Virus record (IMG/VR): IMGVR_UViG_3300042895_001344 | Location: 1 to 64,000 of that record | Length of the DNA: 64,000 bases | Reading direction: 5' to 3' (one strand) | In this document: positions 1 to 53,692 of the stretch, piece after piece | Layout of the letters: each line of letters starts with the position of its first letter | Position numbering within the stretch: position 1 is the first letter of the stretch | Notes under the pieces: model-generated | Told to the model about the DNA's origin: nothing | The model's database searches: none | The model's input: only the letters and a program-made list of their open reading frames with translations | Made by a program: the position numbers and the translations under genes

Positions 1-418
1 ATGCTTGACGATACTGAATTTCATCTGGTAAGTTATCATACTCTAAGAAATGAATATATTGTTTACCTAATTGTTTAACAAGATTGAAAGCATTTTTCAT
101 TGTCAACCAAATTGCATAGTCGTGATGAAAATCTATTTTATTAGTTATCTTATATGAACCCATATCGGTCCATCTATCACTATTAATACCATACTCAGCA
201 AAATCCTTTTCTAATAATATGTCGTTATTACCATCATATAGATAGTAATCTGCTAACACTTGTATCTCAGGTGAAACTGCATAATGTCCACATAATATAA
301 TGGGACAGTTATAAACCTTTAAACTTATAAGTAATTTCTTTAAAACATTTTCTTTATCTTTATTATCAGGCCAGCAGTCAACTACAAAAACATCATCATT
401 AAATTGTGTATATCCCAT
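1..418 (-). CDS. Partial ORF running off the left edge; hypothetical, probably glycan-related (not in the ORF track)
   Basis: ATG at 418 overlaps the TAA of the upstream gene. Open frame MGYTQFNDDVFVVDCWPDNKDKENV...HFLEYDNLPDEIQYRQA continues to the window edge. Confidence 0.75.
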   Translation of the reverse strand, partial: MGYTQFNDDVFVVDCWPDNKDKENVLKKLLISLKVYNCPIILCGHYAVSPEIQVLADYYLYDGNNDILLEKDFAEYGINSDRWTDMGSYKITNKIDFHHDYAIWLTMKNAFNLVKQLGKQYIHFLEYDNLPDEIQYRQA

Positions 419-30030: not shown

Positions 30031-30576
30031 ATGAGTTCACCAGAATATACCCCATATAAGGACGCACTAACAAATTCAATGACTTACCTTGGTCAACAGG
30101 AAGATACTGTATTTATAGGTCAACAGGTTCTTTGGCACGGTAATCCAATGAGTACGACCATTGGTGATGTTCCTAAAGAAAAACTAATTGAACTTCCCGT
30201 TATGGAAGAATCTCAAATGGGTATGTCATTAGGAATGGCTATGGCTGGTAAGTTTGTCGTTACATTCTACCCTCGTTGGGATTTTGTAATATGTTCAACA
30301 AATCAATTAGTTAACCATGTTGATAAAATTGGATTAATGAGTCAAGGTAAATGGCAACCTAATATGATTATTCGTTTAGGTAAGGGTTCTGATAAACCGT
30401 TAGATCCAGGTCATCAACACAGAGGTAATTACTTTGAGGAATTCAAATCCATGTGTCCTAATATTAATTTTATTGATTTAAAGGATTGGAACGATATTGA
30501 ATTACATTATAAAAACGCATACGAAAAAGGTGGTATTCATGTAATTGTGGAATATCCTGAATTATATTATATTTAA
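30031..30576 (+). CDS. TPP-dependent enzyme, E1-beta/transketolase pyrimidine-binding domain only
   Basis: ELPVMEESQMGMSLGMA, PGHQH; 181 aa with no C-terminal domain. Confidence 0.8.
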   Translation: MSSPEYTPYKDALTNSMTYLGQQEDTVFIGQQVLWHGNPMSTTIGDVPKEKLIELPVMEESQMGMSLGMAMAGKFVVTFYPRWDFVICSTNQLVNHVDKIGLMSQGKWQPNMIIRLGKGSDKPLDPGHQHRGNYFEEFKSMCPNINFIDLKDWNDIELHYKNAYEKGGIHVIVEYPELYYI

Positions 30577-31644
30577 TTTTTTATTAACTAAATGATGGAA
30601 ATTATGTGTAACAATTTTCTTTTTATTTATATAATATAATTCATTCATGAATGAATTAAAAAATGGATGATCTTCTTTAAAAACTTGTATTTTTTTAACT
30701 TCTTCTTCGGTGTATGCACCATCTCCCCAATGTACATGTTGTGTATAATTAATATGTAATTTAAAACTACTACTTTTAAAAATATCTGTCATTATATTAT
30801 AAAACATTCCCATTTCTAAATAATTTTTCTCACTTACAACAAAAGACAATGTTAAATAATTAATAGTATCAATTGTACTTATAAATTTGAGATTACCTAA
30901 TAACATATCCCAATCACCATTTAATCTGGTAATATTTTCGTAAGTATATTTAGTTCCCGCATCTATACTAATTTCAATAGATCCTATATATTTTTTCGCT
31001 TGTAATGAATTCCACATTTTTTCATTTAACATTTTACCGTTAGTAATAATGTTTATATATTGTAAATTTGGATATTTTTTAATATCAAAATTAATTAAAT
31101 AGTTTCTATAAATTTTAGAATAAAATGGATCTCCACTACCAGTTATTAATATTGTTTTTATATGACTGGCAAATTTAGTCTCAATTTCATAAAGAGTTTT
31201 TAATTTATCTTGATGTTTTTTAGAATTTTCATCATCATTTGAAACTAAGTCCAATCTACAAGATGGACATTTAAAATTACAACTTCTATCAAAACCAAAT
31301 AAAACGTTCTCAGGATGGGTTTCTATTTTTTCAACATCTTCGATTGAGTTAATTTTATGATAGTTTAGAAATTTTTCTTTTTCTATGAAATTAATTGGTA
31401 TTTCGTTTGTGTTTAATAATCTATTTAAACTAGGACACACATTATGATCACAATGTCTATATGTTCCATCTAATACTGATTTCCGTATATCAATTGCCGT
31501 ATTAGTATCCCACTCTATTTCTTCTTTGCCGTCTCTAATACTTGTTGGACACCATGAGGGGCAACAAACATACACTTGATATGGTTGTAAGTCCATATAA
31601 CTAAACGGGTTAGTACAAACATATTTATTTAACTTATCCTTCAT
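30562..31644 (-). CDS. Radical SAM protein with N-terminal twitch/SPASM-like Cys cluster
   Basis: CTNPF, CCPSWC, CNFKCPSC, GSGDPF. Likely ATG at 31644. Confidence 0.8.
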   Translation of the reverse strand: MKDKLNKYVCTNPFSYMDLQPYQVYVCCPSWCPTSIRDGKEEIEWDTNTAIDIRKSVLDGTYRHCDHNVCPSLNRLLNTNEIPINFIEKEKFLNYHKINSIEDVEKIETHPENVLFGFDRSCNFKCPSCRLDLVSNDDENSKKHQDKLKTLYEIETKFASHIKTILITGSGDPFYSKIYRNYLINFDIKKYPNLQYINIITNGKMLNEKMWNSLQAKKYIGSIEISIDAGTKYTYENITRLNGDWDMLLGNLKFISTIDTINYLTLSFVVSEKNYLEMGMFYNIMTDIFKSSSFKLHINYTQHVHWGDGAYTEEEVKKIQVFKEDHPFFNSFMNELYYINKKKIVTHNFHHLVNKKLNII

Positions 31645-32062
31645 TTTCTTCTTTTGTTGGCCAACTAACTTCCCAATCTTTAAAATCAGCCGCAATACAA
31701 TCAATTTTATAATCTTTTCTTCCACCAACAACTTCTTGTATTTTATTCTTGGCGGTATTTCTTATACCATTTAATCCGTGAGTTAACGATAACATACTTG
31801 GTCCTTCTTTTCCACTTCTTACATTAGATTCGTTATGCCAAATGTGTAAATTCATTTGTGCACATACAATAACCGCTCTCAACATCTCACCAGTTATAAC
31901 AACATCTTTCTCACTTAAAATAAGTTGTATGTCGTGTGTGATATCAGCAATTTCTTTAGCGTATTCTTCTTTATGTTCAGTTATAAACACTTCTTTTAAT
32001 TGTACAATCGAAAGTCTATCAATTAACTCCGATAATGTTGGTAAAAATCTTCTTTGTTCCAT
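31634..32062 (-). CDS. Helical hypothetical protein (DUF6165-like)
   Basis: LPTLSELIDRLSIVQLK N-terminal motif; coupled to neighbouring genes. Confidence 0.5.
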   Translation of the reverse strand: MEQRRFLPTLSELIDRLSIVQLKEVFITEHKEEYAKEIADITHDIQLILSEKDVVITGEMLRAVIVCAQMNLHIWHNESNVRSGKEGPSMLSLTHGLNGIRNTAKNKIQEVVGGRKDYKIDCIAADFKDWEVSWPTKEENEG

Positions 32063-33027
32063 TATATTAATTTGTTTTGTTTTTTTATTTCTGATAAATA
32101 ATCATTTTTTATTATAAAATCATACATAGTTTTTGCAATCTCAGTATGAGCTTTTATTGACGGGTGTGCACAGGGTGTTATATATCCACCTTTTGACATT
32201 TTTTTATTTGAGTACGCGTAATCGTAATATTTTGCCGATGATTCTACACCTATTAAATCGTCTCTATTCTCTAAATGACATAACATGTCAGCAACACAAG
32301 AAAAACCTCCTGGTTTGAGGTAACTATCCCAATTAACCATAGTCATCAATTCATTAAGATAATGAATATTACCATAAAGATAGTTTTCCTTTGTTTTTTC
32401 TCCTCTTATTTTTTTATAAAATGATTCATTGTTATAATCTGTTGAGAAAGCACTTGTTAATATTAATTTTGCATTATTTGCTTTACACCATGTTTGAGCT
32501 TCATGAATGTTCAATATTAATTCTATTGTTGCGGATCTATCTGAATAGATATGAGTAAGATACTCATTCCATAAACCTCTTTCATCTCCGACATGTGAAT
32601 CGGTTGGCCACATTGTTTTAAAATGAATATGTTGATTTAAATTTTTATGTACAAAATCAAATCTCTCCATACCTGTTAACATGAAAATAACTATTTTTTC
32701 TTTTATATTTTCAAATTTAAACGCGGGGTGCATTGATAATTGTTTAACAGATGCTCGATTACCTCTACCTACCATACCTAAATTAATCGACATATAATCT
32801 GTTAAATGGTTTTTACATAATTGATTTACCCATGAGTTTTCATAAAAGATTGTATCCACGATTTTTTCGTCGGATTCAGGAACATTTTTCATATCCCAAT
32901 TATATTTTTTCCATATATCTTCACTACAAGCACCTTGTCCTTGTGTAAAACTATCTCCAATACCAATTATAACTTTAGAATCTGTAGTTAATTTTCTAAT
33001 TAAATCGTATTTATACCAATCAAACAT
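32062..33027 (-). CDS. SGNH-like protein
   Basis: IGDSFTQGQG, GRGN, AHPS. Confidence 0.6.
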   Translation of the reverse strand: MFDWYKYDLIRKLTTDSKVIIGIGDSFTQGQGACSEDIWKKYNWDMKNVPESDEKIVDTIFYENSWVNQLCKNHLTDYMSINLGMVGRGNRASVKQLSMHPAFKFENIKEKIVIFMLTGMERFDFVHKNLNQHIHFKTMWPTDSHVGDERGLWNEYLTHIYSDRSATIELILNIHEAQTWCKANNAKLILTSAFSTDYNNESFYKKIRGEKTKENYLYGNIHYLNELMTMVNWDSYLKPGGFSCVADMLCHLENRDDLIGVESSAKYYDYAYSNKKMSKGGYITPCAHPSIKAHTEIAKTMYDFIIKNDYLSEIKKQNKLI

Positions 33028-34313
33028 TAAATTAAATTTTTAATTTTATTTGTATGATTACAATAATTTTTTAAATTGGTATACGCTTCAGGTAATTTAA
33101 ATAATTTACCAACCAATACTGATTGATTATATTTTATAATTTCTTCCATAGAAGAAAACCATTTTAATTTATCTTGAATATCATCAACTTTTTTAATTGA
33201 CTCAATAATATATTGTAACCTTTCATGTGTCGGTAAATGATCATATCCCTCATCTATAAAACCATCAAATGTTTTATATCCAATTTTTTTCATCATTTCC
33301 ATACTATCCTTATTCCCCATTATAATAAATGGACTATTACATGCAATAACTTTAAATGTTTTTTCACTTAAAAACATGGTTTCGTCACTATCACCACAAT
33401 GAGCTTCACTAATAACCGTCATAAATGTATCTAATGAAATTTGATTATTGAATCTTCTAATATAGAAATTATCATCAAATTCATCGTTACTTTTTTCATG
33501 TACTAAAAGTGGTAATCCAACTAATATTTCGTCTATACGTTCTTTACTTATTTCTTGTCCTTCAAATATATAACCATGTTTATCGAATGAGTTCATACTA
33601 ACTAATCCCTTGTTAATTAATCCCGCTTGATGTAAGTAATTATAAAACCAAACTCTTTGTAATCTAATTCTTTTATTTAAACAAGCGAAAGTTTTAATAT
33701 GAGATATATTTTCTGTTTTATGTGTGATGTGATCTTCAAATGTTGGTAATGGGTGGTTATCTCTGATTTTTTCATAACACATCATCCCCATATCTAATTC
33801 AAAATGTGAATATGGTATAACTTTAATCTTTTCAATTACATCATTGTCTTTTGTCCATTTTTCATATGTTTCATCGGCAATCATATTACCAGTAACATAA
33901 ATGATACGTGTTGGTGAAACATTCCATTCTTTACATTCTTTATGAAACCACTCCCATAACCAAGGTGTTTGATACCCCTCTAAACTTTGATCCAACATAA
34001 CATAAGCTTTATTATTTCTTAAGTCAGTTAGATATTTTTCATTAAGATAAAAGAAAAAACTTTTAACCCTAGGGTCATACCCTGTCCAATCATCGGGACT
34101 ATGGTTTACTGATGTTGGGATTATATACTCTTCATCAATTATTTCATCTACCGAATAATAATTTAACTCTCCATTAATATTTGATAATTGGCAATTAATG
34201 TTTGTTGCGGTTAATAATGGTGATATACCAAACCTATTAATCCCTGATCTATTAATATCTTTACAGGAAGTAAAATTAGCCAGATTAAACTTATCTTCAA
34301 AAACAAAATTCAT
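33027..34313 (-). CDS. GT10-like family putative glycosyltransferase
   Basis: LNKRIRLQR and TVISEA..LSEKTFKVI..PFIIMG..GYD. Confidence 0.45.
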   Translation of the reverse strand: MNFVFEDKFNLANFTSCKDINRSGINRFGISPLLTATNINCQLSNINGELNYYSVDEIIDEEYIIPTSVNHSPDDWTGYDPRVKSFFFYLNEKYLTDLRNNKAYVMLDQSLEGYQTPWLWEWFHKECKEWNVSPTRIIYVTGNMIADETYEKWTKDNDVIEKIKVIPYSHFELDMGMMCYEKIRDNHPLPTFEDHITHKTENISHIKTFACLNKRIRLQRVWFYNYLHQAGLINKGLVSMNSFDKHGYIFEGQEISKERIDEILVGLPLLVHEKSNDEFDDNFYIRRFNNQISLDTFMTVISEAHCGDSDETMFLSEKTFKVIACNSPFIIMGNKDSMEMMKKIGYKTFDGFIDEGYDHLPTHERLQYIIESIKKVDDIQDKLKWFSSMEEIIKYNQSVLVGKLFKLPEAYTNLKNYCNHTNKIKNLI

Positions 34314-35761
34314 TATTTATTGTAATTTTCTTTATCTGACACATAAACTCCAGGTTCATAGTGTGTTATTCTACCATCAGTAATTTTTACATCTTGTATT
34401 GTGTTGTCAATCACTAATGAATTATACCAATCTTCTAACTCAGGGAATGTCTCCACGAAATTCTTGTTTCTACGAATATCATATTGAACATAGAAGCTTT
34501 TAAAGTCATGATATTGTATTGACATGTCCATTTCACTTGTATTATGACCTCTATTAACAACTTCAATATAATCAATCAATCTTTGAATTTGAGCACCTTC
34601 ATGCATATTGATTAACGGATTCTTTTTATGTTTTCTCCACCACATTGATAACTTACCGTGTAAATCGTGTTTAATATCGTCCGGTAATGTAAGTGGTGAC
34701 ATAAACGCCGGCCATCTTAAAATGTTAAAGTCAACAATTGGTTTATGTGTTCCGTATTTCTCTTTTAATTTCAACATATCATCTAAAAATTCAGTAATAC
34801 TAAATAAACACAAACTATTAATTGTCATCATAATAACAACTTGTCTAATTTTAGCACTCTCAATTACTTTAACTAAATTACTTCTCCATAGTTCATAATT
34901 TAAACCATCCCTAATATATTCCGCTTGCTCACCATAAGCTTCACAACTTGTATACAAATCGAATTCTTTGATGTCTAATTCGTGAGATATACTAATTAAC
35001 CTATTCACCGTCGTTTCGTTAAGACCTAGGTTAGAATTGACTGCAAGTCGTAAATTAGGGGACGGATATTGTTTCATTGTATCCATGAACTGCCAAAAAT
35101 TACGAGATTGTGATGGTTCTCCACCAGTTACACGTATTTCCATTAATTTTTGTGACAATTCAGGCCACCATTTTAAGAAAGCATCAACATATGGATTGTT
35201 CTCATTGTATTTACCGTAAATCTCAGACCAAGATCCGTCAGCATAATATGCCCCCGCACTTGTTGTTTTAAATTTCTGATATGGACCATTATCTTTAATG
35301 TCTTTACCCCATGTTGTTGAGTATCCTGAATTACAATATGAACAAGCAAAATTACATGTTCTATCAAAAGATACCTCGATAGTCTGTGGTACAATATCCG
35401 CATCCCAAGGTAGTTCTTTTAATGCCGCAATATCTTCAGAACTATAAATTTGACTTTTATATATACGATCCGAAATATTATTTCTACCGATATCTTCAAT
35501 CTTCCAACAGTAAGAACATTCCGCCGGTTTAACACCTTCTAACATCATTTTACGAATTTCTTTCTTAAAATCAGTATTATGTAATGCTGCTGGATTTGTT
35601 TTTATTGCTTCAACATCAATGGGATGTGGTAATGGTAAATGACACGAGTTTGTAAATCCATGACCTAAGTGTAAACTAACATTTAACCATTTAGCCGCAC
35701 AAAAACTACAACTTACTTTATTTAAATGTTCATCTCTCCAGTTTGCTAATTGTTCTGACAT
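34313..35761 (-). CDS. Twitch-domain radical SAM protein
   Basis: CAAKW, SCH, CSYCW, CNFACSYC, TGGEP. Confidence 0.85.
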   Translation of the reverse strand: MSEQLANWRDEHLNKVSCSFCAAKWLNVSLHLGHGFTNSCHLPLPHPIDVEAIKTNPAALHNTDFKKEIRKMMLEGVKPAECSYCWKIEDIGRNNISDRIYKSQIYSSEDIAALKELPWDADIVPQTIEVSFDRTCNFACSYCNSGYSTTWGKDIKDNGPYQKFKTTSAGAYYADGSWSEIYGKYNENNPYVDAFLKWWPELSQKLMEIRVTGGEPSQSRNFWQFMDTMKQYPSPNLRLAVNSNLGLNETTVNRLISISHELDIKEFDLYTSCEAYGEQAEYIRDGLNYELWRSNLVKVIESAKIRQVVIMMTINSLCLFSITEFLDDMLKLKEKYGTHKPIVDFNILRWPAFMSPLTLPDDIKHDLHGKLSMWWRKHKKNPLINMHEGAQIQRLIDYIEVVNRGHNTSEMDMSIQYHDFKSFYVQYDIRRNKNFVETFPELEDWYNSLVIDNTIQDVKITDGRITHYEPGVYVSDKENYNK

Positions 35762-35795: not shown

Positions 35796-36542
35796 TTATT
35801 TCATATATTGTATTGGTACTTTTTCTAAAAAGTTACAATTTTTTGATTCATCATAAATTATATCTAAATTGTTAATAATCTCAAAATCGTATAAACAAAT
35901 AAGATCTTCATAATAATATTTTTCTACTAAACCTACTAATTCAGATTGATATAAATCTTTTGCATCATTTATATCTGACGACTTCATTAAAATAGAAAAA
36001 TGATTTAAGTCCATTTCCCCATAATATCTTTGTTCTTTCAACCCGCAATCAGGACTCGAACACCCTAAATATAAACCGTCCGACCTATAATCTTCAATTA
36101 ATTGTCCTTCAAATGTTAGTTCATTTACTTCGACAAAGTTTTTATATAATATAAATTTATTTAATTTTCTAATAACAGATAGTGTTACACCATTTTCAAC
36201 GTCCTTCTTATCCACATCTTTAAAATGTATATATTTAAATTCATCTTCTCCATTGTCTTTTCTTACCCAAAATTCCCAAGCAACATCGTTAGTTTCACTA
36301 TTATATGATAATCCCATATTTTTTCCAGGTTTACCGTATATCATACAAATTTTATCAATTTTATATTTTTCTTTAATTGTAAAATTACAGGTAATTATAA
36401 ATTTTTCTTTATGTTGAAAATCATACACATTATAATTTTTTTCTTTATCAAAAATAGTAACGTATTGATTATCGTGATGTTCACTTAAATCCCAATTATA
36501 TTTAATCCAATAAGGGTGTTTATATTTTATTCTCATATTCAA
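35796..36542 (-). CDS. Degenerate LamG/concanavalin A-like domain protein
   Basis: Paralogous to the N-terminus of the next gene: GKPGKNMGLSY, LYLGC, YYGEMDLNHFSI, CLYDF. Confidence 0.45.
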   Translation of the reverse strand: MNMRIKYKHPYWIKYNWDLSEHHDNQYVTIFDKEKNYNVYDFQHKEKFIITCNFTIKEKYKIDKICMIYGKPGKNMGLSYNSETNDVAWEFWVRKDNGEDEFKYIHFKDVDKKDVENGVTLSVIRKLNKFILYKNFVEVNELTFEGQLIEDYRSDGLYLGCSSPDCGLKEQRYYGEMDLNHFSILMKSSDINDAKDLYQSELVGLVEKYYYEDLICLYDFEIINNLDIIYDESKNCNFLEKVPIQYMK

Positions 36543-38619
36543 TTTTCTTTATAAATTTAATCAATTCTGGAAAATATTCTTCGCAAACATAACCTCTTCT
36601 AATTTCATATTCTCTAATAAATTTTACAAAATCTAATTTGTCTTTATTAAATGAATTAGAATCAAGTTCTGAATCACTAATAAAAATATCTCTCAATCTA
36701 GATATTTTTTCAATTTCTTGTAATGAAAAACCAACATCTTTAATTTCTTGCATTTTATGAAAATTTAAACTTCTAAAACTTGTGTTAAATTTCATAAATT
36801 TTATACATCTATCAAAATAATCAATTTTAACATAATCTTTTAATATCCTAAAACTTAAAAACGGTGGATGTCTTAAATATGATGTGTCCAAAATAATTGC
36901 CGAATTCCAATATCTTTCATCATTAAAATGTTTAATTTTCATTTTATATATTCTTTTTATTAATCTCTCATAAGAAAATACACTAAATATATTAAATGTT
37001 GCCATAACGACAATAGTTACTTTCGGTAATAAAGTTAGAATTTTATCTATATTTTTAAATAACATATTAAAATCTAAACCATACCTAGTGTATTCGGCTT
37101 GTTTTCCGTCAGCTTCACAAGATGTAAAAATAATTATTTCTTTTACTCTTTTTTCGTCAATTATAATTGTTAACTTTTCAATTAATTTATCAACTAAATC
37201 ATCAGGTATACCTAAATTACTATTAATTGATAATTTTAAATTTTTATTTGGTTCCTCAGTTTCAATAATGTAATCTAGTACTTTCCAAGTATCTTTAGAT
37301 AGCAATGGTTCTCCTCCGGTAATTCTAAACGTATCTAAACTACTATATAATTCGGGAAACCACGTCCAAAAAGCTTGGACGTATGGATTTTCTTCAGAAT
37401 GTTTATATGGTACCGTATTTCGTTCTTCCATTCTTTTTGTACCATTATAATCATATGAAAGTCTATATGGTCCATATTGATTAATTTCTTCCATCCATTT
37501 AGATGAATATTCAGGTCCACAATATGCACATTTAAAATTACAAGTATTGGAAAAACTAACTTCAGCATACTTTGGGTTAAAATCATCTCTCCAATTTGAT
37601 TTAGATATATCATGAAAATATGGTTCTGACCAAGGTTCCGATGATTTAAAAATTCTATCTGAAAATGATTTTACAGTTGTGTCTTCAACATTCCAACAAT
37701 ATTGACATTCGGATGGTCGTTCTCCTTCCAACATTTCTTTTCTAGCTTGTTTTTTTATTAGACTATTATGTAATGCCGTTGGATTTCTTTTAATTTCATT
37801 TAAATTTACTTTATGTGGTTCTGGATGGTGACAACTATGTGTTGTTCCATTATGTAAATGCATGGTTACTTGAGTCCATTTAGCCAAACAAAATCCGCAA
37901 CCAACACCATCTAATTTTTCCTTCATTAATTCGAATCCAACGTTAGACATTTTATTTTTTTTCTTTAAAAATGTCTTATCTTTTAACTCGTCCATTATTA
38001 AAAACTCGTCATTTTTATCCTCCAAATCATAATAACAATATAATGTATCAAAATCATATGAATTTTTTAATTCAGTACTATCTGTTGAATATTTTTCTAA
38101 CTTTTCAATATCAATATCCTCAGAATATATACTTAAATGTTTTAACTCCATTTCGGTTAAACATTTATGTCTAATATTTGTACTATCAATATTATGACAT
38201 CCAATATATATTGGTTCATTAATATAATCACTAACCAATTCACCTTCACTTTCTATTGTGTCGATTAATTTAAAATCTTTATATAATTTAAATGTTTTTT
38301 TATTGTAGGTAATTGACAATGTTAATCCACTCGATAAAGTGGAGTTATTTAAGATGTCATAAGTATAACAATTAAATTTTTCTTCTCCGTTTTCTTGTAC
38401 TGTCCAAAATTCAAATACAAACAAATCAACTTCATAATCATAACTAATACCAAAATTTTTACCAGGTACACCTAAAAATCCAATTTTGTAGTCTTTTTCA
38501 AAGTCTTTACCTATTTTAAATGAAATATTAATACTAAAACTACCTTGAGTAATTATATTACTTTGTATTTCATGTAATTTTGGTTTTAGGAACCACGGTT
38601 TCTGATATTCTATTCTCAT
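36520..38619 (-). CDS. LamG-like domain fused to a twitch radical SAM enzyme
   Basis: N-terminal GVPGKNFGISY, IYIGC, CYYD; C-terminal CLAKW, CQYCW, CNFKCAYC, TGGEP. Confidence 0.8.
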   Translation of the reverse strand: MRIEYQKPWFLKPKLHEIQSNIITQGSFSINISFKIGKDFEKDYKIGFLGVPGKNFGISYDYEVDLFVFEFWTVQENGEEKFNCYTYDILNNSTLSSGLTLSITYNKKTFKLYKDFKLIDTIESEGELVSDYINEPIYIGCHNIDSTNIRHKCLTEMELKHLSIYSEDIDIEKLEKYSTDSTELKNSYDFDTLYCYYDLEDKNDEFLIMDELKDKTFLKKKNKMSNVGFELMKEKLDGVGCGFCLAKWTQVTMHLHNGTTHSCHHPEPHKVNLNEIKRNPTALHNSLIKKQARKEMLEGERPSECQYCWNVEDTTVKSFSDRIFKSSEPWSEPYFHDISKSNWRDDFNPKYAEVSFSNTCNFKCAYCGPEYSSKWMEEINQYGPYRLSYDYNGTKRMEERNTVPYKHSEENPYVQAFWTWFPELYSSLDTFRITGGEPLLSKDTWKVLDYIIETEEPNKNLKLSINSNLGIPDDLVDKLIEKLTIIIDEKRVKEIIIFTSCEADGKQAEYTRYGLDFNMLFKNIDKILTLLPKVTIVVMATFNIFSVFSYERLIKRIYKMKIKHFNDERYWNSAIILDTSYLRHPPFLSFRILKDYVKIDYFDRCIKFMKFNTSFRSLNFHKMQEIKDVGFSLQEIEKISRLRDIFISDSELDSNSFNKDKLDFVKFIREYEIRRGYVCEEYFPELIKFIKKIEYENKI

Positions 38620-40049
38620 TTCATTTTAACATTTATAAATTTTGTATTAGGGTATAATGTATCATCAACATTATCAACATCTAACACTTCTAATATTTTA
38701 TTAAGTCCATCTTTTTTATAATCTATCTTTTTTTGTTGCATTTCAGTAACAAATCTTTTCTCATTTCTTGCGGTCGTTTCTCCCTTTTTCCATTCACCAT
38801 TAATAAATCCTTCGTCTTCATGAAACATACAATTAAAATTACCTTCTCTTCTTATTGGAATTATATTATCGATAACTTCAATATCTTCTTTAGTAATTTC
38901 AGTATTAAGATTTTCACATATTATATTATTTACCTTATCTAAATAACCATTCTCAAAATCCATATGTAAAACCAAACTTTTTTCTTTACTAACCGACATT
39001 TTTATATTTTTATAACACTTGTCATATATTTTAACTTCAGCAATTTGGCCTTTAAAATATGTTTTTTGGTTGCTACAAAACCCTAATATAAATGGATTGG
39101 TGTTATCGTGTTTTTTAAGGTTTTCTCCAATCATAAATGATTTATTCTCTTTAACATCGTTTACGTTAGTGACTAATTCATTATTAACAAAGAAATACAT
39201 TTCTTTTGTTTTATTATCAAATGAAACTGTTACCCACGTCCATTCATTTTCAAATTTCTTAACCCAATTATTATGATAATTTTCGTTTTTATCAAAAACT
39301 GTCATGTTAACCGTCCTTGAATTATTAAAGGATAACCCCCATGTCCAAGATTCGTGTTTTCTTAATATTGGGTATTCAATAAATTTCTTTTCTTTGTCAC
39401 CAACCAACCAAATAGGCACTTTCTCTTGTTGTTGTTCTGCTTTAAATAATACAGAAATAGTATGATTACCAGATAAACATTTACTTATCTTTTCGTTTGT
39501 TGGTATAACCACTAATGAATCATCTCCATTAAAATTTACAACCGATTTTTCTTTATGTGATTTAAAAATCTTACCATCTTTATAACCCTCAAAATAACAC
39601 CTCCAAAAAAGATCATCATCTTCTTGACCCCAATCCCAATATTCGTTTGAATAACCATTGGTTTGATACGCTTGTTCTTTGGTAAATAAAACAACACCTC
39701 CAAAGTATTGATCATACCCTAATGTGTAATTATACTTTGATAATTTGGTTGCAATATGAACTGGTGATTTTTCAGGATAGGAGTAATCACAAATTAAATT
39801 ATCTTTATCGATTGCTAACATATCCACGTCGTGCCAAGCTACATAATCACAACCATCTTCAAACGCATAATGTGCTGCAATGTTTTTTGTTGCACCTCTA
39901 TTAAATAATTTATCATCAACTTGATGTCCAACATAAAATTTATGTTCTATTCCTTTTTCATTTAAATATTTTGATAAATGTGGTATCAAATTCTCAATGT
40001 GTTCCTTTCTATTTCTGTACGGTATACAAATACCTAATTTATGACTCAT
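38616..40049 (-). CDS. GT7 (beta-1,4-galactosyltransferase-like) with an inserted LamG domain
   Basis: IPYRNR, FNRG, WHDVD, YFGG, NGYSN.YWDWGQEDDDL. Insert FNGDDS..YFKGQIAEVKIY. C-terminal H..NE.RF..DGL. Confidence 0.8.
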   Translation of the reverse strand: MSHKLGICIPYRNRKEHIENLIPHLSKYLNEKGIEHKFYVGHQVDDKLFNRGATKNIAAHYAFEDGCDYVAWHDVDMLAIDKDNLICDYSYPEKSPVHIATKLSKYNYTLGYDQYFGGVVLFTKEQAYQTNGYSNEYWDWGQEDDDLFWRCYFEGYKDGKIFKSHKEKSVVNFNGDDSLVVIPTNEKISKCLSGNHTISVLFKAEQQQEKVPIWLVGDKEKKFIEYPILRKHESWTWGLSFNNSRTVNMTVFDKNENYHNNWVKKFENEWTWVTVSFDNKTKEMYFFVNNELVTNVNDVKENKSFMIGENLKKHDNTNPFILGFCSNQKTYFKGQIAEVKIYDKCYKNIKMSVSKEKSLVLHMDFENGYLDKVNNIICENLNTEITKEDIEVIDNIIPIRREGNFNCMFHEDEGFINGEWKKGETTARNEKRFVTEMQQKKIDYKKDGLNKILEVLDVDNVDDTLYPNTKFINVKMK

Positions 40050-41461
40050 ATTCCAACTGTTACAAATGTTATGTTATTTTCGTTTGTTATTCCGTGTTCT
40101 ACAAAATTTAAATCTGATAATCCATCGTTATATAATAATTCGTGATTTGTAGATACTTCATTTATAAATCGTAGTTGATTCCATCTAGTAGATTGATCTT
40201 TCCATTTGTTATCTAAAAATCCATTTTCTTCGTGAGGTAAACTTTCAAATAGAGATTTTCTCCTATGTGGAACATATAATTCGTATATACTATCTACTAT
40301 TAAGTCTGTAATTTCACAATTAATGATTTCACCATCATTATTATTTCCTGATAAATCTTTTAATTTATAACCTTTTATTATCTTAGTGTCATAATATAAT
40401 TTAAGGGAATCCGCAGATTTGTAATCACCAAAATTTTGTGTTAAACCCTTAAATTTATTTTTTGATATTTCCATTATTTCATTATCATCTAAAACGATAT
40501 CATAAACGGCAAAAGCATCAAAATATCCTTTAAAATATTTTGGTTCATATTCATTGTTAAGGTCACCTGTTCCAATATAAAAAAATGGTTGTTTTTGGTA
40601 TTGATGTAGTTTTCCTGAAAATTCTACTTTACCAATAATATCCCCGTCTTGGTATACTTTAATAATCTTATCTGTGTCGTTAATTGTAATGGAAATATTT
40701 GTCTTATAATTTTTCTTTATTTTAGAATTAACATAAAGTACATTATGTTTATTATCAAAAGTACAAATATTATATCTGGAAAATGAGTTGAATGATATTG
40801 AAAAATCATATCCTGGTATTGTAAATATATTAAATTGATCCACTTCTTTTGTATGGTCACATATTATATCATCAGGATAAAAGGAAATAAATAATGTAAT
40901 ATCCTTATTAAAGTTAAGATTATTTATACCTTTTACGTAAGCATCTTTTCCATTAAATTTTAATACAGAACCTGATGTTCCCATATTATCTAAGTAAAGT
41001 GTATTTAAATCTAAATCATTCACAACACACCTTAAAAGTAAATCAGTATCTTCATAACCCCATCCCCAATACTTGTTAGAATACCCGTTTATTTTTTTAA
41101 AATCTTTAACATTAAACATGGTCACTCCTCCAAAATATGTGTCAAATATTTCTCTATCTTGGTTTGAAAAATTGGTAGCTAAGTGTGTGGGTGTAATAGA
41201 ATAACTGTAGTCTACGTCGATCGGTAACATATCTATATCATGAAAAACAACATACTTACATTTAAGTTTCTCAGCATAAGTAAATCCTATATTTAATAAC
41301 ATTCCTCTATTGAACAATTTAGCATCATCTTGTTCAACTATGATAATCTCATACGGAATATTCTTTTCACTAAGATATTTTGTAATTCTCTCTTTAAAAA
41401 TATCAAGCTGTTCGTATCTATTTCTAAATGGAACTATTATACCTACTTTTCTATTGTGCAT
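40046..41461 (-). CDS. GT7 with an inserted LamG domain (paralog)
   Basis: VPFRNR, FNRG, FHDID, YFGG, WGWGYEDTDL. Insert FNGKDA..YFKGYFDAFAVY. C-terminal DGL. Confidence 0.8.
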   Translation of the reverse strand: MHNRKVGIIVPFRNRYEQLDIFKERITKYLSEKNIPYEIIIVEQDDAKLFNRGMLLNIGFTYAEKLKCKYVVFHDIDMLPIDVDYSYSITPTHLATNFSNQDREIFDTYFGGVTMFNVKDFKKINGYSNKYWGWGYEDTDLLLRCVVNDLDLNTLYLDNMGTSGSVLKFNGKDAYVKGINNLNFNKDITLFISFYPDDIICDHTKEVDQFNIFTIPGYDFSISFNSFSRYNICTFDNKHNVLYVNSKIKKNYKTNISITINDTDKIIKVYQDGDIIGKVEFSGKLHQYQKQPFFYIGTGDLNNEYEPKYFKGYFDAFAVYDIVLDDNEIMEISKNKFKGLTQNFGDYKSADSLKLYYDTKIIKGYKLKDLSGNNNDGEIINCEITDLIVDSIYELYVPHRRKSLFESLPHEENGFLDNKWKDQSTRWNQLRFINEVSTNHELLYNDGLSDLNFVEHGITNENNITFVTVGI

Positions 41462-41693
41462 TTTTCTTTACTTTCTTATCGTCAGTTTTAATTTCTTCTT
41501 CTACATCATCACCCTTTACTATTTTATTATGAAATTCGGCAAGATAATATTGGACTCTTTGTCCCCACTCATCTTTATCGATTTCTTCAAACCACACAGT
41601 TAATGCGTCTAATGAATTGGCAATTTTTTCTAATGCTTTTATTTTTCTCGTTTCGAGAGCTAATTGCTCATCTTTTTCTGTTTTTACACTCAT
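41451..41693 (-). CDS. Small hypothetical protein
   Basis: 80-aa ORF overlapping both neighbours. Confidence 0.6.
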   Translation of the reverse strand: MSVKTEKDEQLALETRKIKALEKIANSLDALTVWFEEIDKDEWGQRVQYYLAEFHNKIVKGDDVEEEIKTDDKKVKKNAQ

Positions 41694-42547
41694 ATTGATA
41701 TGATTTTTTTAATTAATTTATTCCAATTTTTATAATGGTTATATTCTGGTTTATTTAATCCTAATTCAAACATAAAATCAGGATTTAATAAATTTATTTT
41801 AAAATTTGTCTTTTTTAATTCTTTATACATTTGAAAATATTCACTTGAAAACGCATAATCTTCATTTAGGTTTGCAACATTCGATACTCTATCTATTGAT
41901 GTTGAGTCCCATTTAAAGTGATGAACTTGTACTGAGTGTGTATCCACTGGTGCAATTAATGGATGACTCCACCCTTGCCATCTCCATGTTGTGTGGTCGT
42001 CAATTTTAGCATAATGTTGTCCTGCCGTTACATCAACATATCCTTTCATAATACAAATCTTATTTGGACATGCGTTACTCATTGGATATCTAAAAAAACC
42101 AGCATTAGGAAATTGTTCCCATATAGATACGTCATTAACTAACTCAGTAAATTCGCCCCCTGTACCAATTCTATCAATAAAACCACCTCTTACAATATCC
42201 CAATTATTTTCTTGACAATCATATATTATTTTACGTAAATCATCATTAGGATATAAATGAAATTCATCAATATCAGCAATAACATACCAACTATCTTTTC
42301 GTTTTGATTTAACAAAATTATAAAGTTGCGTTACTTTTTCCCAATCAAATACTCTTTCTTGTATAGTTATAACAACATTAACTTTTTCGTAGTTTTTAAT
42401 TACTTGATTAATTTCTTCGGTTAAATTTGGATGTAATTCGGTTTCGTATACGGCAATATTAATTTCATCAACATGTTTTTGATAATGTTCAATGAAATGT
42501 GGAAGTAAGTTAATTCCGTGACCTATAACTGTTAATAATTTAACCAT
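41690..42547 (-). CDS. GT2-like glycosyltransferase (GT-A fold)
   Basis: HFIEHY, WYVIADIDEF, HHFKW. Confidence 0.65.
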   Translation of the reverse strand: MVKLLTVIGHGINLLPHFIEHYQKHVDEINIAVYETELHPNLTEEINQVIKNYEKVNVVITIQERVFDWEKVTQLYNFVKSKRKDSWYVIADIDEFHLYPNDDLRKIIYDCQENNWDIVRGGFIDRIGTGGEFTELVNDVSIWEQFPNAGFFRYPMSNACPNKICIMKGYVDVTAGQHYAKIDDHTTWRWQGWSHPLIAPVDTHSVQVHHFKWDSTSIDRVSNVANLNEDYAFSSEYFQMYKELKKTNFKINLLNPDFMFELGLNKPEYNHYKNWNKLIKKIISI

Positions 42548-43271
42548 TTTTCTTATTAATTACCGTAATACCACTAGATGACGGTTTATTAGGTAATATA
42601 CCAAAATTAAATAGATTAATCAAATTAAAAGATGGGTTTTTTTCTAATTCTTTAATAAACTTTGATGGTCCATCGAATCTATGATGATCTTTTTTTGCAT
42701 CTTCAGAAACTATAAGTTTTTCCTCATAATCTGAATCCGTATCGTGGATAACGATAATACCTTTATCTGTTAATAGTGTTGAATATAACTCAAAATCTTT
42801 CTTGACTCCTTCATATGAATGGTCACCATCTATAAAGATAAAATCTAATTTAATATCTTGTAAAACAAAGAAATTATAATATGCGTCTTCTGATGTTGAT
42901 TTAATCAATCTGGGATGAAATTTATAACGGAAATATGAATTCTCATCCTCTAAGTCGTTAGGTCCTCCTACCCCATTACAAGCGTCAACCAGGTAGGTTA
43001 CTCCAATGTCTCCCCAACTTAAATTATCATCTCCCTCAAATATTCCTTGTTTGTGTAAATCAATTCTTGCTTGTGTCATAATACGGGGTATAAACCCACC
43101 TCCAGACCCGATACAGACACAGGTTTTTGCTCTCATATGTTGTATCAGTGAATAAACAACAAGACCGTCACCCATATGTTCTGTCGTTGCACCATGTGTC
43201 CATCTATAAGGGACTGGATCACCTCCATTTGTTGTGATATTTCCTGTTATGAAATCTTGATTGGTAATCAT
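42540..43271 (-). CDS. SAM-dependent methyltransferase (Methyltransf_24-like)
   Basis: CIGSGGG, FIFIDGDHSYEG, IIVIHD. Confidence 0.8.
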   Translation of the reverse strand: MITNQDFITGNITTNGGDPVPYRWTHGATTEHMGDGLVVYSLIQHMRAKTCVCIGSGGGFIPRIMTQARIDLHKQGIFEGDDNLSWGDIGVTYLVDACNGVGGPNDLEDENSYFRYKFHPRLIKSTSEDAYYNFFVLQDIKLDFIFIDGDHSYEGVKKDFELYSTLLTDKGIIVIHDTDSDYEEKLIVSEDAKKDHHRFDGPSKFIKELEKNPSFNLINLFNFGILPNKPSSSGITVINKKNG

Positions 43272-50164: not shown

Positions 50165-53100
50165 TTATGATTTTTTAGGTGTTGCAATATTAGGGTTAAC
50201 TTCAGTTAAAGCAAACTTATATACTTTACCCTTCTTATTATTATATAAGAATAAATCATCTTCACCTTCCACTATTGTCCAATCACCAATTCCGTTGTTT
50301 AAGGATAAATCCGACGTATAAACTGTACTCCAACGATATGTTGCCGAACCTAAATCTCTTGTTCCATTTGCTTCAGGTAAAACGTTACCTGCTACCGTTA
50401 ATGTTGAACCGTCAAATGTTAAATTGGCTTCAGCATTTAATGTAACTCCACCGGCACTTGTCATTATTCTATTGTCAACAGCATTTGTAATTGTTGTTGT
50501 ACCACTGGAACCTGAAGAACCGTTACTACCACTAGAACCTGATGTTCCTGAACTACCGTTAGAACCTGAAGAACCACTAGTTCCTGATGACCCTGAACTA
50601 CCCGATGTTCCACTAGAACCTGATGAACCGTTAGATCCACTAGAACCTGATGTACCACTAGACCCTGAAGAACCATTTGAACCTGATGTTCCTGAAGATC
50701 CACTAGTACCTGATGTTGCTGCAGTATATGATGTTCCGTTTATTGATAATGAACCAGTTATACTTAAACTACCTGTAACTTGATGTGTGTCATCTAATGT
50801 ATCACCAAATTTTGTTGATCCTGAAGAATACATAACAGATGATGTAACATATGTCATGAAAAGTTCGTCAGCCGTAATTGCCCCTTTAACTTTTAATGAA
50901 CCTGTAATCTCAACATTTTTAGTTGCCGACCATATAGACCCTGTTTGTGCGAATATTGAATCTCCCGATGAACCACTTGAACCATTGGAACCTGAACTAC
51001 CTGATGTTCCACTTGATCCTGAAGTACCTGAAGTACCGCCTGATCCAGATGATCCTGATCCACCGCTAGAACCTGATGTACCTGATGTTGCGGACGTATA
51101 TGATAGACCACCAATTGTAACTCCATTTGTAAAATTAGCTGAACCCGATACGATAATATCGTCACCAAAAACAACACTATTACCACCTGAACTTAATATT
51201 TTAGATCCGTCTTGTAGTACAATATTTCCTCTAACATCAACCGAACCCGTCGTTGGGTCAATTAATATATTACCTCCACCCGATGACTTTAATTGAATAT
51301 CTCCATCCACAGTTTGGAATGTGATTGTATCTGTACCTTGTTCTAAAATCTTAATTGATTGACCGTTGTCGGTTGTAATCTGTAATTCTTGGTTTGTACT
51401 ACCTAAAACTTTTTGTCCGTCAATGTATAATGATGCACTTGATAAGTATAAGTGTCTAAATGGATTTGACTCACTACCCAAATCAAATGAACCACTACCT
51501 ACAGGTACAATTGACCCACTGAATGTTTGAGTTCCTTTAAACGTATTTGAACCTGTGATTGCAAAACCTAAATTTGTTCCTTGAACACTTGAACTTACAA
51601 TATTACTACTTAATAGAGCTGAAGATAAATCCACCGCTCCACTAACCATATGTCCACCTCTAACTACATTCACACTACCTGAAACTGCAAGTGGGAAATA
51701 AACATTAAGATTATTATTATCAACAGATTCTATTCTACTTGGTATGATTATACTTCTACTATCGTCCCAAACCGTAACAACAGGGAAATCAATACCTAAA
51801 TTGTGGAATACCGACCATGTTGCTAATGATGCGAATGTTTGTGTTGCTCCACCTATTCCATCTCTACCACTTGTTCCTGATGTACCTGAAGTACCACCTG
51901 AACCTGATGAACCCGAACCACCACTGGTTCCTGAAGAACCATTAATACCACTTGTTCCTGAAGAACCATTAATACCACTAGTTCCTGATGAACCACTAGT
52001 TCCAGATGAACCACTTGTACCTGATGTACCCGCAGTTCCCGCTCCACCTACAGTTACACTTATTGTTCCCTCTTGTGCAAATGGGAAATATACACTTATA
52101 TTATTTGTGTCTGTTGAAATTATTTCACTTGGGATTACAATACGTCCGTCATTATCAAATACTTGAACTGATGGATATCTAACACCCATTTGGTGATTAA
52201 ATGACCATGTGGCTGCTGCAACACTAACGTTTTGTGTTTTTGTTTGTCCATTTAATACAACGGCGTTTAAAGCATGTGATGCCGTTAATGCGTATGATGA
52301 ACTTGCAATTGTTGTTGTTGAACTTGATACGTATGAATTAAACCATGACTCATCTAACTTACCTGTTCCAACAACTGCACCATTAACGTATAATGATCCA
52401 GTAATCTTTACAGATCCAGTAAAATTATGATTATCGTCAAATGTATTACCAAATGCTGTTGAACCTGATTCAAATAATACTGAAGACGTAACTAATGCCG
52501 TATGAATTTCTTTTGCTGTAAGTGTTCCTGTAATTGTTAAATCACCATTTACTTTAGCATTATTTGTGGTTTCCCAAACCGAACCTGTTAAAGCAAATAA
52601 ACTATCTCCTGATGAACCTGATGAACCACTTGTTCCTGTTGTACCACTTGATCCTGCAGTACCTGAAGAACCTGCAGTTCCTGAAGAACCACTAGATCCT
52701 GATGTACCTGATGAACCGTTACTTCCACTAGTTCCTGATGAACCTGAAGTTCCTGTGGATCCACTAGACCCTGATGTTCCACTTGTTCCATTACTACCTG
52801 ATGTTCCTGAAGAACCATTACTACCGCTAGATCCTGATGTTCCACTGCTACCTGATGAACCATTAGATCCACTAGAACCTGACGTACCTGAAGTACCTGA
52901 TGATCCATTACTACCGCTAGATCCTGATGTTCCTGAACTACCTGAAGAACCACTAGTTCCTGTAGAACCGCTAGATCCTGATGTTCCTGAACTACCTGAA
53001 GAACCTGACGTTCCAGAAGAACCATTACTACCCGATGTTCCTGATGAACCATTAGATCCTGAAGTTCCACTAGAACCACTTGTACCACTCGTTCCCGATG

Positions 53101-53692
53101 TTGTGGACGTATATTCGGTTCCATTTATATTAAATGAACCTGTTAAATTAATTGAACCTGATAAAATTAAATTATTGTTTTCATCAAGTAACATTTGTCT
53201 GTTACCATTTCTACTGAAAACTAAACCATCAATATCAGTTGTTGCACCTCTTGCAGCACCTATCGTCCAATTCTCTCCACTCCAATTAAAACGAACACCC
53301 GATGCAACTCTATTTGGTGTGTTAAATCCTGCTGCATTATAAATTGAACTATCAGGAACAAATGCTTGAACATTTGCAACGGGGTCCGAACCTGATACTA
53401 CTAATGATGTTAATGATGTATTCCCTAAAACTCTTAAAGAACCTGACGTATTTAAAGATCCTGTAATATTTTCTGTTCCAATTAAATTGAAACTACCACT
53501 AAGATTTAATGAACCTGTGTTCTGAGCATTTGTAGTAACTATTTCCTCAATAGAGGTAGAAGCCGATCCTGATTTGGCAAAGTATAATTTACCGTCGGTT
53601 GTGTTTATTGCTATTTCCCCTAATTGTAATTGGGAGTTAGTAGGTCTATTCCCACCAGTGGAACTTCTACGTAGTTTTACTATTTGACTCAT
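50165..53692 (-). CDS. Long tail fibre-like protein with Gly-Ser/Thr-Ser repeat stalks
   Basis: N-terminal KLRRS...LGEIAINTTDGKLY; four G-x-x repeat blocks; C-terminal DLGSATYRWSTVY..WTIVEG. Confidence 0.8.
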   Translation of the reverse strand: MSQIVKLRRSSTGGNRPTNSQLQLGEIAINTTDGKLYFAKSGSASTSIEEIVTTNAQNTGSLNLSGSFNLIGTENITGSLNTSGSLRVLGNTSLTSLVVSGSDPVANVQAFVPDSSIYNAAGFNTPNRVASGVRFNWSGENWTIGAARGATTDIDGLVFSRNGNRQMLLDENNNLILSGSINLTGSFNINGTEYTSTTSGTSGTSGSSGTSGSNGSSGTSGSNGSSGTSGSSGSSGTSGSSGSTGTSGSSGSSGTSGSSGSNGSSGTSGTSGSSGSNGSSGSSGTSGSSGSNGSSGTSGSNGTSGTSGSSGSTGTSGSSGTSGSNGSSGTSGSSGSSGTAGSSGTAGSSGTTGTSGSSGSSGDSLFALTGSVWETTNNAKVNGDLTITGTLTAKEIHTALVTSSVLFESGSTAFGNTFDDNHNFTGSVKITGSLYVNGAVVGTGKLDESWFNSYVSSSTTTIASSSYALTASHALNAVVLNGQTKTQNVSVAAATWSFNHQMGVRYPSVQVFDNDGRIVIPSEIISTDTNNISVYFPFAQEGTISVTVGGAGTAGTSGTSGSSGTSGSSGTSGINGSSGTSGINGSSGTSGGSGSSGSGGTSGTSGTSGRDGIGGATQTFASLATWSVFHNLGIDFPVVTVWDDSRSIIIPSRIESVDNNNLNVYFPLAVSGSVNVVRGGHMVSGAVDLSSALLSSNIVSSSVQGTNLGFAITGSNTFKGTQTFSGSIVPVGSGSFDLGSESNPFRHLYLSSASLYIDGQKVLGSTNQELQITTDNGQSIKILEQGTDTITFQTVDGDIQLKSSGGGNILIDPTTGSVDVRGNIVLQDGSKILSSGGNSVVFGDDIIVSGSANFTNGVTIGGLSYTSATSGTSGSSGGSGSSGSGGTSGTSGSSGTSGSSGSNGSSGSSGDSIFAQTGSIWSATKNVEITGSLKVKGAITADELFMTYVTSSVMYSSGSTKFGDTLDDTHQVTGSLSITGSLSINGTSYTAATSGTSGSSGTSGSNGSSGSSGTSGSSGSNGSSGSSGTSGSSGSSGTSGSSGSNGSSGTSGSSGSNGSSGSSGTTTITNAVDNRIMTSAGGVTLNAEANLTFDGSTLTVAGNVLPEANGTRDLGSATYRWSTVYTSDLSLNNGIGDWTIVEGEDDLFLYNNKKGKVYKFALTEVNPNIATPKKS

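Follow-up and report, generated by a model that had tools for sequence, protein, structure and literature searches.

A LamG-like domain inside two GT7 glycosyltransferases and ahead of a radical SAM enzyme in a gene cassette of an uncultured T4-like jumbo phage

The locus and its GT7 genes

The window analysed here spans 64,000 nt, positions 1-64000 of the IMG/VR virus record IMGVR_UViG_3300042895_001344, which is 217 kb long and has a CheckV completeness estimate of 65%. Within it, four adjoining minus-strand open reading frames (ORFs), in which the stop of one overlaps the start of the next, each encode a laminin G (LamG)-like domain. These are P0004 (GT7b; 40046-41461, 471 aa) and P0003 (GT7a; 38616-40049, 477 aa), two family 7 glycosyltransferases (GTs); P0002 (36520-38619, 699 aa), a LamG-like N-terminal domain joined to a twitch-type radical S-adenosylmethionine (SAM) core; and P0001 (ORF 35796-36542, 248 aa), a free-standing LamG-like protein. 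P0001 more likely starts at the ATG at 36536, which gives a protein of 246 aa and is shared by its homologues, than at the TTG at 36542. A hydrophobic segment at the N-terminus is absent from all four proteins, and a cytoplasmic location is therefore plausible for them.

The GC content across the region of interest is 25-30%. The record is that of an uncultured T4-like jumbo phage, as it carries a T4 gp23-type capsid gene at 178-180 kb and related contigs are as long as 330-350 kb. A giant-virus origin was set aside, with T4 gp23 present and no match to a capsid of the nucleocytoplasmic large DNA viruses, in a search whose controls were also silent. Among 50,697 deposited phage records no cultured phage matched at the DNA or protein level, and none of the PHROG families was matched by P0001, P0002, P0003 or P0004.

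The catalytic domain of both GT7 proteins is encoded in two separated parts. In GT7a the N-part (aa 1-160; 39570..40049, minus strand) includes PYRNR, FNRG, H73-D74-V-D76, Y115-FGG, W138/W140 and E143-D144-D145-D146, and the C-part (aa 396-477; 38616..38864, minus strand) includes P398, R400, F405, H410, N429, R432 and G448. In GT7b the N-part (aa 1-155; 40997..41461, minus strand) displays PFRNR, FNRG, HDIDM, which holds the DxD motif, and WGWGYEDTD, and alignment with P0003 places P398, R400, the lid-hinge His, N..RF and DGL in its C-part (aa 395-471; 40046..40279, minus strand). Against Pfam gathering cut-offs of 27 bits for Glyco_transf_7N and 23 bits for Glyco_transf_7C, P0003 scores 58.6 and 66.7 bits and P0004 scores 72.7 (E 2.8e-20) and 68.0 bits (E 5.6e-19), respectively. 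The two proteins align with each other over their full length at 30% identity.

Only aa 3-157 of P0003 match the solved beta-1,4-galactosyltransferases (beta4GalTs) 7 and 1 by sequence (E 6.5e-31, over aa 3-153 for beta4GalT7; profile E 3.7e-39). A sequence-only search of the PDB with the C-terminal 80-90 residues of both GT7s gave nothing significant, and completion of the GT-A fold was for that reason shown by structure and by a bridging homologue without insert. The AlphaFold2 (AF2) model of P0003, built on 69 orthologues and paralogues from related loci, has a mean pLDDT (predicted local distance difference test) of 91.6 and a pTM (predicted template modelling score) of 0.87. Chain 4m4k_A of beta4GalT7 superposes on this model in VIA-align with Z 26.7 and a root-mean-square deviation (rmsd) of 2.0 over 210/238 residues, and since the match extends through residues 2..477 of the model, the GT-A fold is completed there by the C-terminal segment.

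Across 35 GT7a and 34 GT7b orthologues the catalytic columns D74, D76, W140, E143, D144, D146 and H410 are invariant or conserved to at least 97%. R12, R14, F49-N50-R51, H73, Y115-F-G-G, W138 and R400 are also invariant or nearly so in the same orthologues, and the D145 position is variable in those of GT7b. GT7a and GT7b are predicted to be intact inverting GT-A enzymes of the beta4GalT type and, given this conservation of the catalytic positions, both are probably active. H410 of P0003 aligns with the engineered His of the beta4GalT1 mutants M340H (human) and M344H (bovine), a position that in beta4GalT1 is the metal-ligand site at the hinge of the long flexible lid loop. The Tyr before FGG, Y115, corresponds to Tyr289 of bovine beta4GalT1 (cf. 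the Y289L work), and its invariance suggests a donor without an N-acetyl group, e.g. UDP-Gal or UDP-Glc.

Between the two catalytic parts lies the LamG-like insert, at aa 161-395 of GT7a (38865..39569, minus strand; Pfam Laminin_G_3, E 6.2e-10, 39.8 bits) and at approximately aa 156-394 of GT7b (40280..40996, minus strand; Laminin_G_3 at aa 185-329, E 7.4e-7, 29.9 bits). The gathering cut-off for Laminin_G_3 (PF13385) is 27.6 bits. An earlier note on this DNA, made from the sequence alone, had placed a LamG-like segment inside both GT7 genes; this is borne out by the Pfam matches, all three of which exceed their cut-offs in each protein, and by superposition of the AF2 model. Residues 163/167..387/394 of the GT7a model superpose in VIA-align on the LamG-like domain of PAPP-A (Z ~20), on BACOVA_03559 (4dqa; Z 19.4) and on pentraxins (Z 17-18) over ~180-197 residues, and the insert is accordingly modelled as a LamG/pentraxin-like beta-sandwich of ~235 aa.

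The point of insertion can be read from P0367, a 223-aa relative that has no insert. Over its entire length P0367 can be aligned with beta4GalT1 (E 2.5e-39), and it also matches both flanks of the P0003 insert; in the joint alignment its '...EDDD..RC...RK.GRY.SL.H' runs into P398-x-R400 ... H410 of P0003. The canonical GT7 is therefore contiguous at this point, as the earlier note had held, and what the insert has displaced is a turn some four residues long. This turn is flanked by the helix that comes next after the E-D-D-D motif (P0003 143-156) and by the strand that runs on to H410, and the insertion stands ten residues ahead of the lid-hinge His.

In the P0003 model the insert packs rigidly on the catalytic domain. 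The ESM Atlas model of a relative superposes on it with a TM score of 0.86 over 449 residues and thus gives independent support for a fixed domain arrangement. Seven clusters in the ESM Atlas combine GT7N, Laminin_G_3 and GT7C, all of them in Uroviricota. In BFVD giant-virus GT7 proteins and phage LamG proteins are present and no GT7-LamG composite was found.

The insert is the fastest-evolving part of these proteins. Its mean pairwise identity among orthologues is 46%, versus 76% for the N-part of GT7a and 61% for that of GT7b, and between GT7a and GT7b the insert is 19% and the N-part 44% identical. Judged from these alignments, the pattern would fit a specificity module. The conserved columns of the insert are F173-N-G175, T197, N242, G323 and G334; its S-[FY]-N strand is conserved.

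The segment that closes the insert, LVLHMDF... in P0003 (aa 355-382) and LKLYYD...DLSGNNNDGEI in P0004, resembles the opening strands of canonical LamG_3, LxLHLDA...DLSGNGNNGT. The insert may thus be a circularly permuted LamG. When the N-terminal strands of canonical LamG_3 were compared with the GT7 profile by hhalign they fell in the right place (P0003 355-382), weakly, with E 0.004 and a probability of 8%.

The related domain on radical SAM enzymes and as a free protein

The N-terminal domain of P0002 (P2N, aa 1-225; 37945..38619, minus strand) and P0001 (35796..36536 from its ATG, minus strand) are 30% identical (E 1e-31), and P2N matches the profile of the free-standing (P1) and P2N domains with E 3.2e-76. 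Pfam (E<=1) and NCBIfam recognised no domain in P0001 or in the N-terminus of P0002. P0001 has 100 homologues, all of ~245 aa. Its AF2 model, built from 54 sequences, is a beta-sandwich (pLDDT 89.7, pTM 0.88) with Foldseek matches at E 1e-7 to 1e-5 to PAPP-A, the lectin-like receptor-binding domains of clostridial neurotoxins, sialidase CBM40, neurexin LNS2 and collagen IX NC4. The best PDB matches of the P0001 model are those of the GT7 insert. Both P0001 and the P0003 insert thus adopt the ConA/LamG fold in their predicted structures, which the earlier note had named as a check, and P2N, through its identity to P0001, is predicted to fold as a LamG-like domain.

The relation among the three forms was followed with profile comparisons by hhalign. 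The P1/P2N profile (A4) aligns with the GT7 profile (A3) at a probability of 97.2% and E 3.4e-11, and the alignment falls exactly on the insert (P0003 193-385). With narrower alignments (A1 vs A2) the value was 5.7%, and significance was reached only once the GT7b orthologues and P2N domains had been added. BLASTP of P0001 directly matches the GT7b inserts of three related loci (E 7e-5 to 1e-3). A third profile (A6), made of the canonical LamG_3 proteins encoded at 43-48 kb and their orthologues, aligns with the GT7 insert at 96.2% (E 2.6e-9) and with A4 at 0.3%, i.e. with no detectable relation between canonical LamG_3 and the P1/P2N type. On these hhalign and BLASTP results the enzyme-borne domains are placed by sequence in a separate lineage, connected with ordinary LamG_3 through the GT7 insert, and are not simple copies of the structural LamG genes. 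The earlier note had assigned a related domain to the region ahead of the radical SAM core and to the free-standing protein, which agrees with the present comparison. By profile the GT7 insert is related to the structural LamG genes, and the P1/P2N type detectably to the GT7 insert only.

The remainder of P0002 consists of a linker and the twitch-type radical SAM core (aa 243-689; 36520..37944, minus strand; own-genome match 36553-37893), with the cysteine motif C360-x3-C364-x2-C367. The core scores 302.6 bits (E 4.6e-90) against NCBIfam NF033640 (N_Twi_rSAM), for which the curated cut-off is 170 bits, in agreement with the radical SAM assignment made in the earlier note. Directly after P0001 lies rSAM_b (34313..35761, minus strand), a second N_Twi radical SAM paralogue that has no N-domain; it scores 300.9 bits (E 1.4e-89) against NF033640, and its core is 36% identical to that of P0002. 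No PDB relative of the P0002-type radical SAM was found by sequence, and a literature search on NF033640 found nothing.

A third radical SAM gene (30562-31731, minus strand) stands at the end of the cassette. With 39.4 bits against NF033640 it is a distant relative and not a member of that family, and it scores about equally against the prokaryotic viperin-like family NF038283 (E 4e-10, below cut-off).

The number of LamG-like domains on the orthologous twitch radical SAM enzyme varies among related loci. The enzyme is ~460 aa long and free of an N-domain in many loci (L020, L095 and others), ~700 aa with one copy in the present phage, and ~935 aa with two tandem LamG-like N-domains in L011, L012, L026/L027 and L051/L057. 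This copy number of 0, 1 or 2 reveals the modularity of a docking-type domain. The free P1 gene is found in a subset of loci only, and in 29 of 33 such loci rSAM_b comes next after it, so that the pair P1 and rSAM_b resembles the P0002 fusion divided over two genes.

Conservation and neighbours of the cassette

Related IMG/VR loci were fetched (80 in total) and their genes mapped by BLASTP. The order GT7b, GT7a, radical SAM is kept in nearly all 80, and wherever the flank suffices the full cassette of six genes is found, in the order methyltransferase, GT2-like, small protein, GT7b, GT7a and twitch radical SAM; in a few loci the GT2-like gene or another one has a different position. In the present lineage the cassette continues with the free LamG-like protein and then the second twitch radical SAM gene. 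The same cassette is found on ~12 contigs of GTDB metagenome-assembled genomes (MAGs), with GC from 27 to 45%. Full-length copies of GT7a and GT7b, from the 80 viral loci and the ~12 MAG contigs, are all 448-506 aa long, and the insert is therefore always present. It is kept across 1697 clusters and is retained in both paralogues down to ~28% identity and over a GC range of 27 to 48%.

An exhaustive representative search with GT7 returned 4383 relatives, including dozens of 50%-identity clusters of 455-510 aa in which the whole query is covered. Relatives of 215-235 aa that match P0003 residues 3-157 only also exist, and proteins of cultured bacteria (e.g. Azospirillum, Rhodoplanes) match residues 1-160 only. 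The composite domain string occurs in the automatic Pfam annotation of metagenomic proteins, all of them named 'hypothetical protein'. Neither a GT7 with a LamG domain inside it nor a fusion of LamG to radical SAM was found described in full-text searches of the literature.

Three further genes precede GT7b, all on the minus strand. A small conserved helical protein of 80 aa (41451..41693) is present in nearly all loci and is the best-conserved product of the cassette, at 60-65% identity even where the GT7s are at 35-45%. It matches no Pfam or PHROG family. The GT2-like protein (41690..42547; Pfam Glyco_tranf_2_4, E 8.7e-4, below cut-off) is syntenic in nearly all loci, and the SAM-dependent class I methyltransferase (42540..43271; Pfam Methyltransf_24, E 3.5e-12) is likewise syntenic. 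At the other end of the cassette, ESM Atlas look-up yielded weak leads only, GT10-like (0.80) for the gene at 33027-34313 and DUF6071/GDSL (SGNH; 0.95-0.96) for the gene at 32062-33027.

In the 80-aa protein the core is RKVKALEKIANSLDALTVWFEEIDK.EWS.RIQYYLAEFH; the charged tail behind it varies and often ends in KPKDPTI[ND]G. Going by its sequence, this leader-plus-tail layout would suit a substrate, a scaffold or a regulator.

Upstream of the cassette, at 43-48 kb, four genes encode small Laminin_G_3 proteins. The earlier note had pointed to structural LamG genes in this interval; all four are real, and the one at 44959-45726 matches a PHROG annotated as virion structural protein. A Gly_rich_2 protein and two collagen-repeat proteins are also encoded upstream. 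The collagen-repeat proteins are probably fibres and are candidate glycosylation targets of the cassette.

The collagen triple-helix repeat proteins are encoded on the minus strand at 50165-53692 (1175 aa) and 59371-62982 (1203 aa), with E 1e-40 and 1e-69. Between 54000 and 60000 the GC skew is +0.20 to +0.28 and the AT skew strongly negative, opposite to the flanking minus-strand regions. The longest ORFs in this interval are still on the minus strand, and a plus-strand ORF of 544 aa (56984-58618) overlaps a minus-strand ORF of 610 aa.

Additional information can be garnered from more distant loci. On two distant GTDB MAG contigs (L099 and L103) an insert-bearing GT7 lies beside genes for carbamoyltransferases, a polysaccharide deacetylase, a sulfotransferase and an NDP-sugar epimerase/dehydratase. 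On two metagenome contigs (L091 and L092) 223-aa GT7s without stem, anchor or insert are found next to GT10, GT11, GT2, GT47, GT9 and sulfotransferase genes. Since insert-bearing and insert-less GT7s alike adjoin sugar-tailoring or GT genes at these loci, the gene context points to the building or tailoring of a glycan or glycoconjugate and not to DNA or peptide chemistry.

Beyond the core clade, too, a radical SAM enzyme can be found paired with an insert-bearing GT7. At L099:3239-5977 a 913-aa fusion of an FkbM methyltransferase with a radical SAM domain lies beside the insert-bearing GT7.

Cassettes of GT and radical SAM genes have been described in the hypervariable fibre regions of marine T4-like myophages and were read as serving host-surface modification (PMC7029224), and glycan-modification clusters of jumbo cyanophages were read in the same way (PMC7824862). 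The cassette described here is a conserved, virus-specific and probably sugar-building unit of an uncultured clade of T4-like jumbo phages, with the four LamG-bearing genes as its centre.

Possible roles of the domain and known systems

The reading we favour, to which we give roughly equal chances of being right or wrong, is that the LamG-like domain is a built-in acceptor-docking module used by successive enzymes on one sugar-bearing substrate. The domain would sit beside the mouth of the active site, at the acceptor entrance, and in the manner of a carbohydrate-binding module or lectin would hold a polymeric, sugar-bearing acceptor to be worked on successively by both transferases and by the radical SAM tailoring enzymes. 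It would thereby be a cis-acting equivalent of alpha-lactalbumin, which serves beta4GalT1 in trans, or of the lectin domain of the polypeptide N-acetylgalactosamine (GalNAc)-transferases, and P0001 would supply the docking in trans for rSAM_b. A host envelope glycan and a glycosylated virion fibre are the substrate candidates.

Several points weigh against acceptor docking. That the insert lies near the active site is deduced from alignment and from what has been published on beta4GalT1. The conserved columns of the insert are mostly structural or core hallmarks of LamG_3, and no ligand or binding site was found. The closest structural matches (PAPP-A, pentraxins and the neurotoxin domains) recognise proteins or mixed ligands and not sugars alone. 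The faster evolution of the insert could equally be read as relaxed constraint. A complex prediction for P0001 with rSAM_b, made from custom alignments, scored 0.01 and carries no weight either way.

Alternatively, the LamG-like domains could, as the earlier note had proposed for its second option, be protein-protein modules that join the GT7s, the radical SAM enzymes and P0001 into a multi-enzyme complex. Such a complex would account for one domain lineage on four consecutive gene products, one of which has no catalytic domain, and for P1 followed by rSAM_b as a mirror of the fused P0002, and the top structural match, the LamG-like domain of PAPP-A, is a protein-recognition module. Many relatives, however, lack P1 and have a radical SAM enzyme without the domain while the cassette is otherwise intact, so that assembly through the LamG-like domain is not essential to the pathway; this explanation appears unlikely on balance, if the least unlikely of the alternatives. 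Twitch/SPASM radical SAM enzymes are often peptide maturases, and the domain could instead recognise a protein substrate, much like the recognition elements of ribosomally made, modified peptides, with the cassette modifying the 80-aa protein or the neighbouring LamG and collagen-like fibre proteins of the virion after translation, through glycosylation, methylation and radical SAM chemistry. The strong conservation of the 80-aa protein, its conserved helical core with variable tail, and the position of the cassette beside virion structural and collagen-repeat genes are in line with this, and phage virion glycosylation has a precedent in Freeman et al. 2023, as cited in PMC12619734. At the distant loci, however, insert-bearing GT7 and radical SAM genes occur without the 80-aa protein and with sugar-tailoring enzymes instead, and no acceptor motif was found; we hold recognition of a protein substrate to be unlikely.

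It is less probable again that the insert is a tolerated structural accretion, serving stability or solubility, and that the other copies are by-products of local duplication. That the conserved columns are mainly fold determinants, that the insert is the most variable region and that the radical SAM enzyme may have any number of copies from none to two would all be expected of an accretion; its exceptionless retention in both paralogues across the identity and GC ranges given above, the rigid and confidently predicted packing, and the independent recruitment of the same domain by another enzyme class would not. The acceptors of GT7 enzymes are sugars, and LamG folds are not known to bind DNA. 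Both speak against hypermodification of the phage DNA with sugars, as in the glucosylated hydroxymethylcytosine (hmC) of T4, with the LamG-like domains involved in some way. This is very improbable also from the neighbours at the distant loci, which are polysaccharide-tailoring enzymes, and from the position of the cassette in a fibre and structural region and not in a region of nucleotide metabolism. In its favour are the T4-like nature of the phage and the existence of viral glycosyltransferases that hypermodify DNA (Pyle et al. 2024, as cited in PMC12619734).

Beyond acceptor docking on a sugar, a broader proposal, which we also regard as unlikely, is that the domain is a portable substrate-recognition element, copied from the GT7s to the radical SAM enzymes and to a free adaptor, and directed at one macromolecular target. 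Radical SAM enzymes, glycosyltransferases and methyltransferases would then all dock on a virion fibre or on the 80-aa protein. If true, the domain would be a carbohydrate or glycoprotein counterpart of the recognition element of peptides synthesised on the ribosome and modified after translation (RiPPs), and would be the first known case of a lectin-fold domain gating a GT-A enzyme's lid loop in cis.

GT7 is the textbook case of acceptor specificity set by a lid loop and alpha-lactalbumin, and a widespread GT7 with a lectin-fold domain next to the lid loop would be a natural system for in-cis acceptor control. Insert-bearing GT7s could yield scaffolds for glyco-engineering, and the presence of the same domain on twitch radical SAM enzymes may serve as a handle on their substrates. 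In an abundant, uncultured clade of T4-like jumbo phages the cassette is a conserved core, and what it makes, be it an altered host envelope or a virion with sugars attached, would bear on how hosts are recognised and superinfection is excluded in aquatic phage-host systems.

That lectin domains can be appended to glycosyltransferases is well established; for a LamG domain within GT7 and for its fusion to radical SAM the full-text searches turned up no account. The cassettes reported in PMC7029224 and PMC7824862 resemble the present one in belonging to T4-like phages and in lying beside tail-fibre, ConA-like and collagen-repeat genes. They are mainly of GT8 and other families, with neither an internal LamG in GT7 nor a LamG-radical SAM fusion described there, and are variable add-ons, whereas the present cassette is a conserved core of its clade.

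The beta-sandwich of the insert is that of the N-terminal domain of PAPP-A, of 4dqa, of PTX3/CRP/SAP and of the Laminin_G_3 virion proteins of phages. Known LamG and pentraxin modules are extracellular or virion-borne and terminal or in tandem, whereas here, as far as sequence tells, they lie inside or ahead of putatively cytoplasmic enzymes, and the P1/P2N type, unlike known LamG_3, has diverged past Pfam detection. In copy number and free-standing occurrence a likeness is found in the RiPP recognition elements, small docking domains that are fused or free-standing among pathway enzymes, including twitch/SPASM radical SAM enzymes. Like these, the phage domain occurs in 0, 1 or 2 copies and in a free-standing form; unlike these, which are winged helices, it has a LamG fold and a gene context pointing to carbohydrates.

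Among glycosyltransferases, the GT27 polypeptide GalNAc-transferases are directed to acceptors that already bear glycans by a ricin-type lectin domain at their C-terminus, and others have lectin domains or carbohydrate-binding modules appended. The phage GT7s could be analogous in combining a GT-A catalytic domain with a lectin-type domain. The GT27 lectin domain, however, is a flexible C-terminal appendage of another fold, whereas the phage domain is internal, rigidly packed in the model and of a lineage common to radical SAM enzymes. The catalytic domain itself is closest to the beta4GalTs. GT7a shares the GT-A fold of beta4GalT 7 and 1 (4m4k, 3lw6, 4irq, 1tvy, 2ae7) with Z 26-27, rmsd 2.0 and ~31% identity, and the UDP (uridine diphosphate)-binding, DxD, W-G-x-E-D-D-D and lid-hinge metal-ligand positions of the phage GT7s all match. 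The eukaryotic beta4GalTs are contiguous type II Golgi membrane proteins; the phage GT7s, in contrast, have no membrane anchor or stem and have their catalytic domain split by a 235-aa LamG-like domain.

In lactose synthase, alpha-lactalbumin at the acceptor side of beta4GalT1 re-sets the choice of acceptor. By alignment, the phage insert would be anchored next to the same lid loop as alpha-lactalbumin in that complex (1nf5, 4l41). Alpha-lactalbumin is a separate protein of lysozyme fold that acts in trans, whereas the phage module has a LamG fold and would act in cis, so that the likeness between the two would be a functional analogy only.

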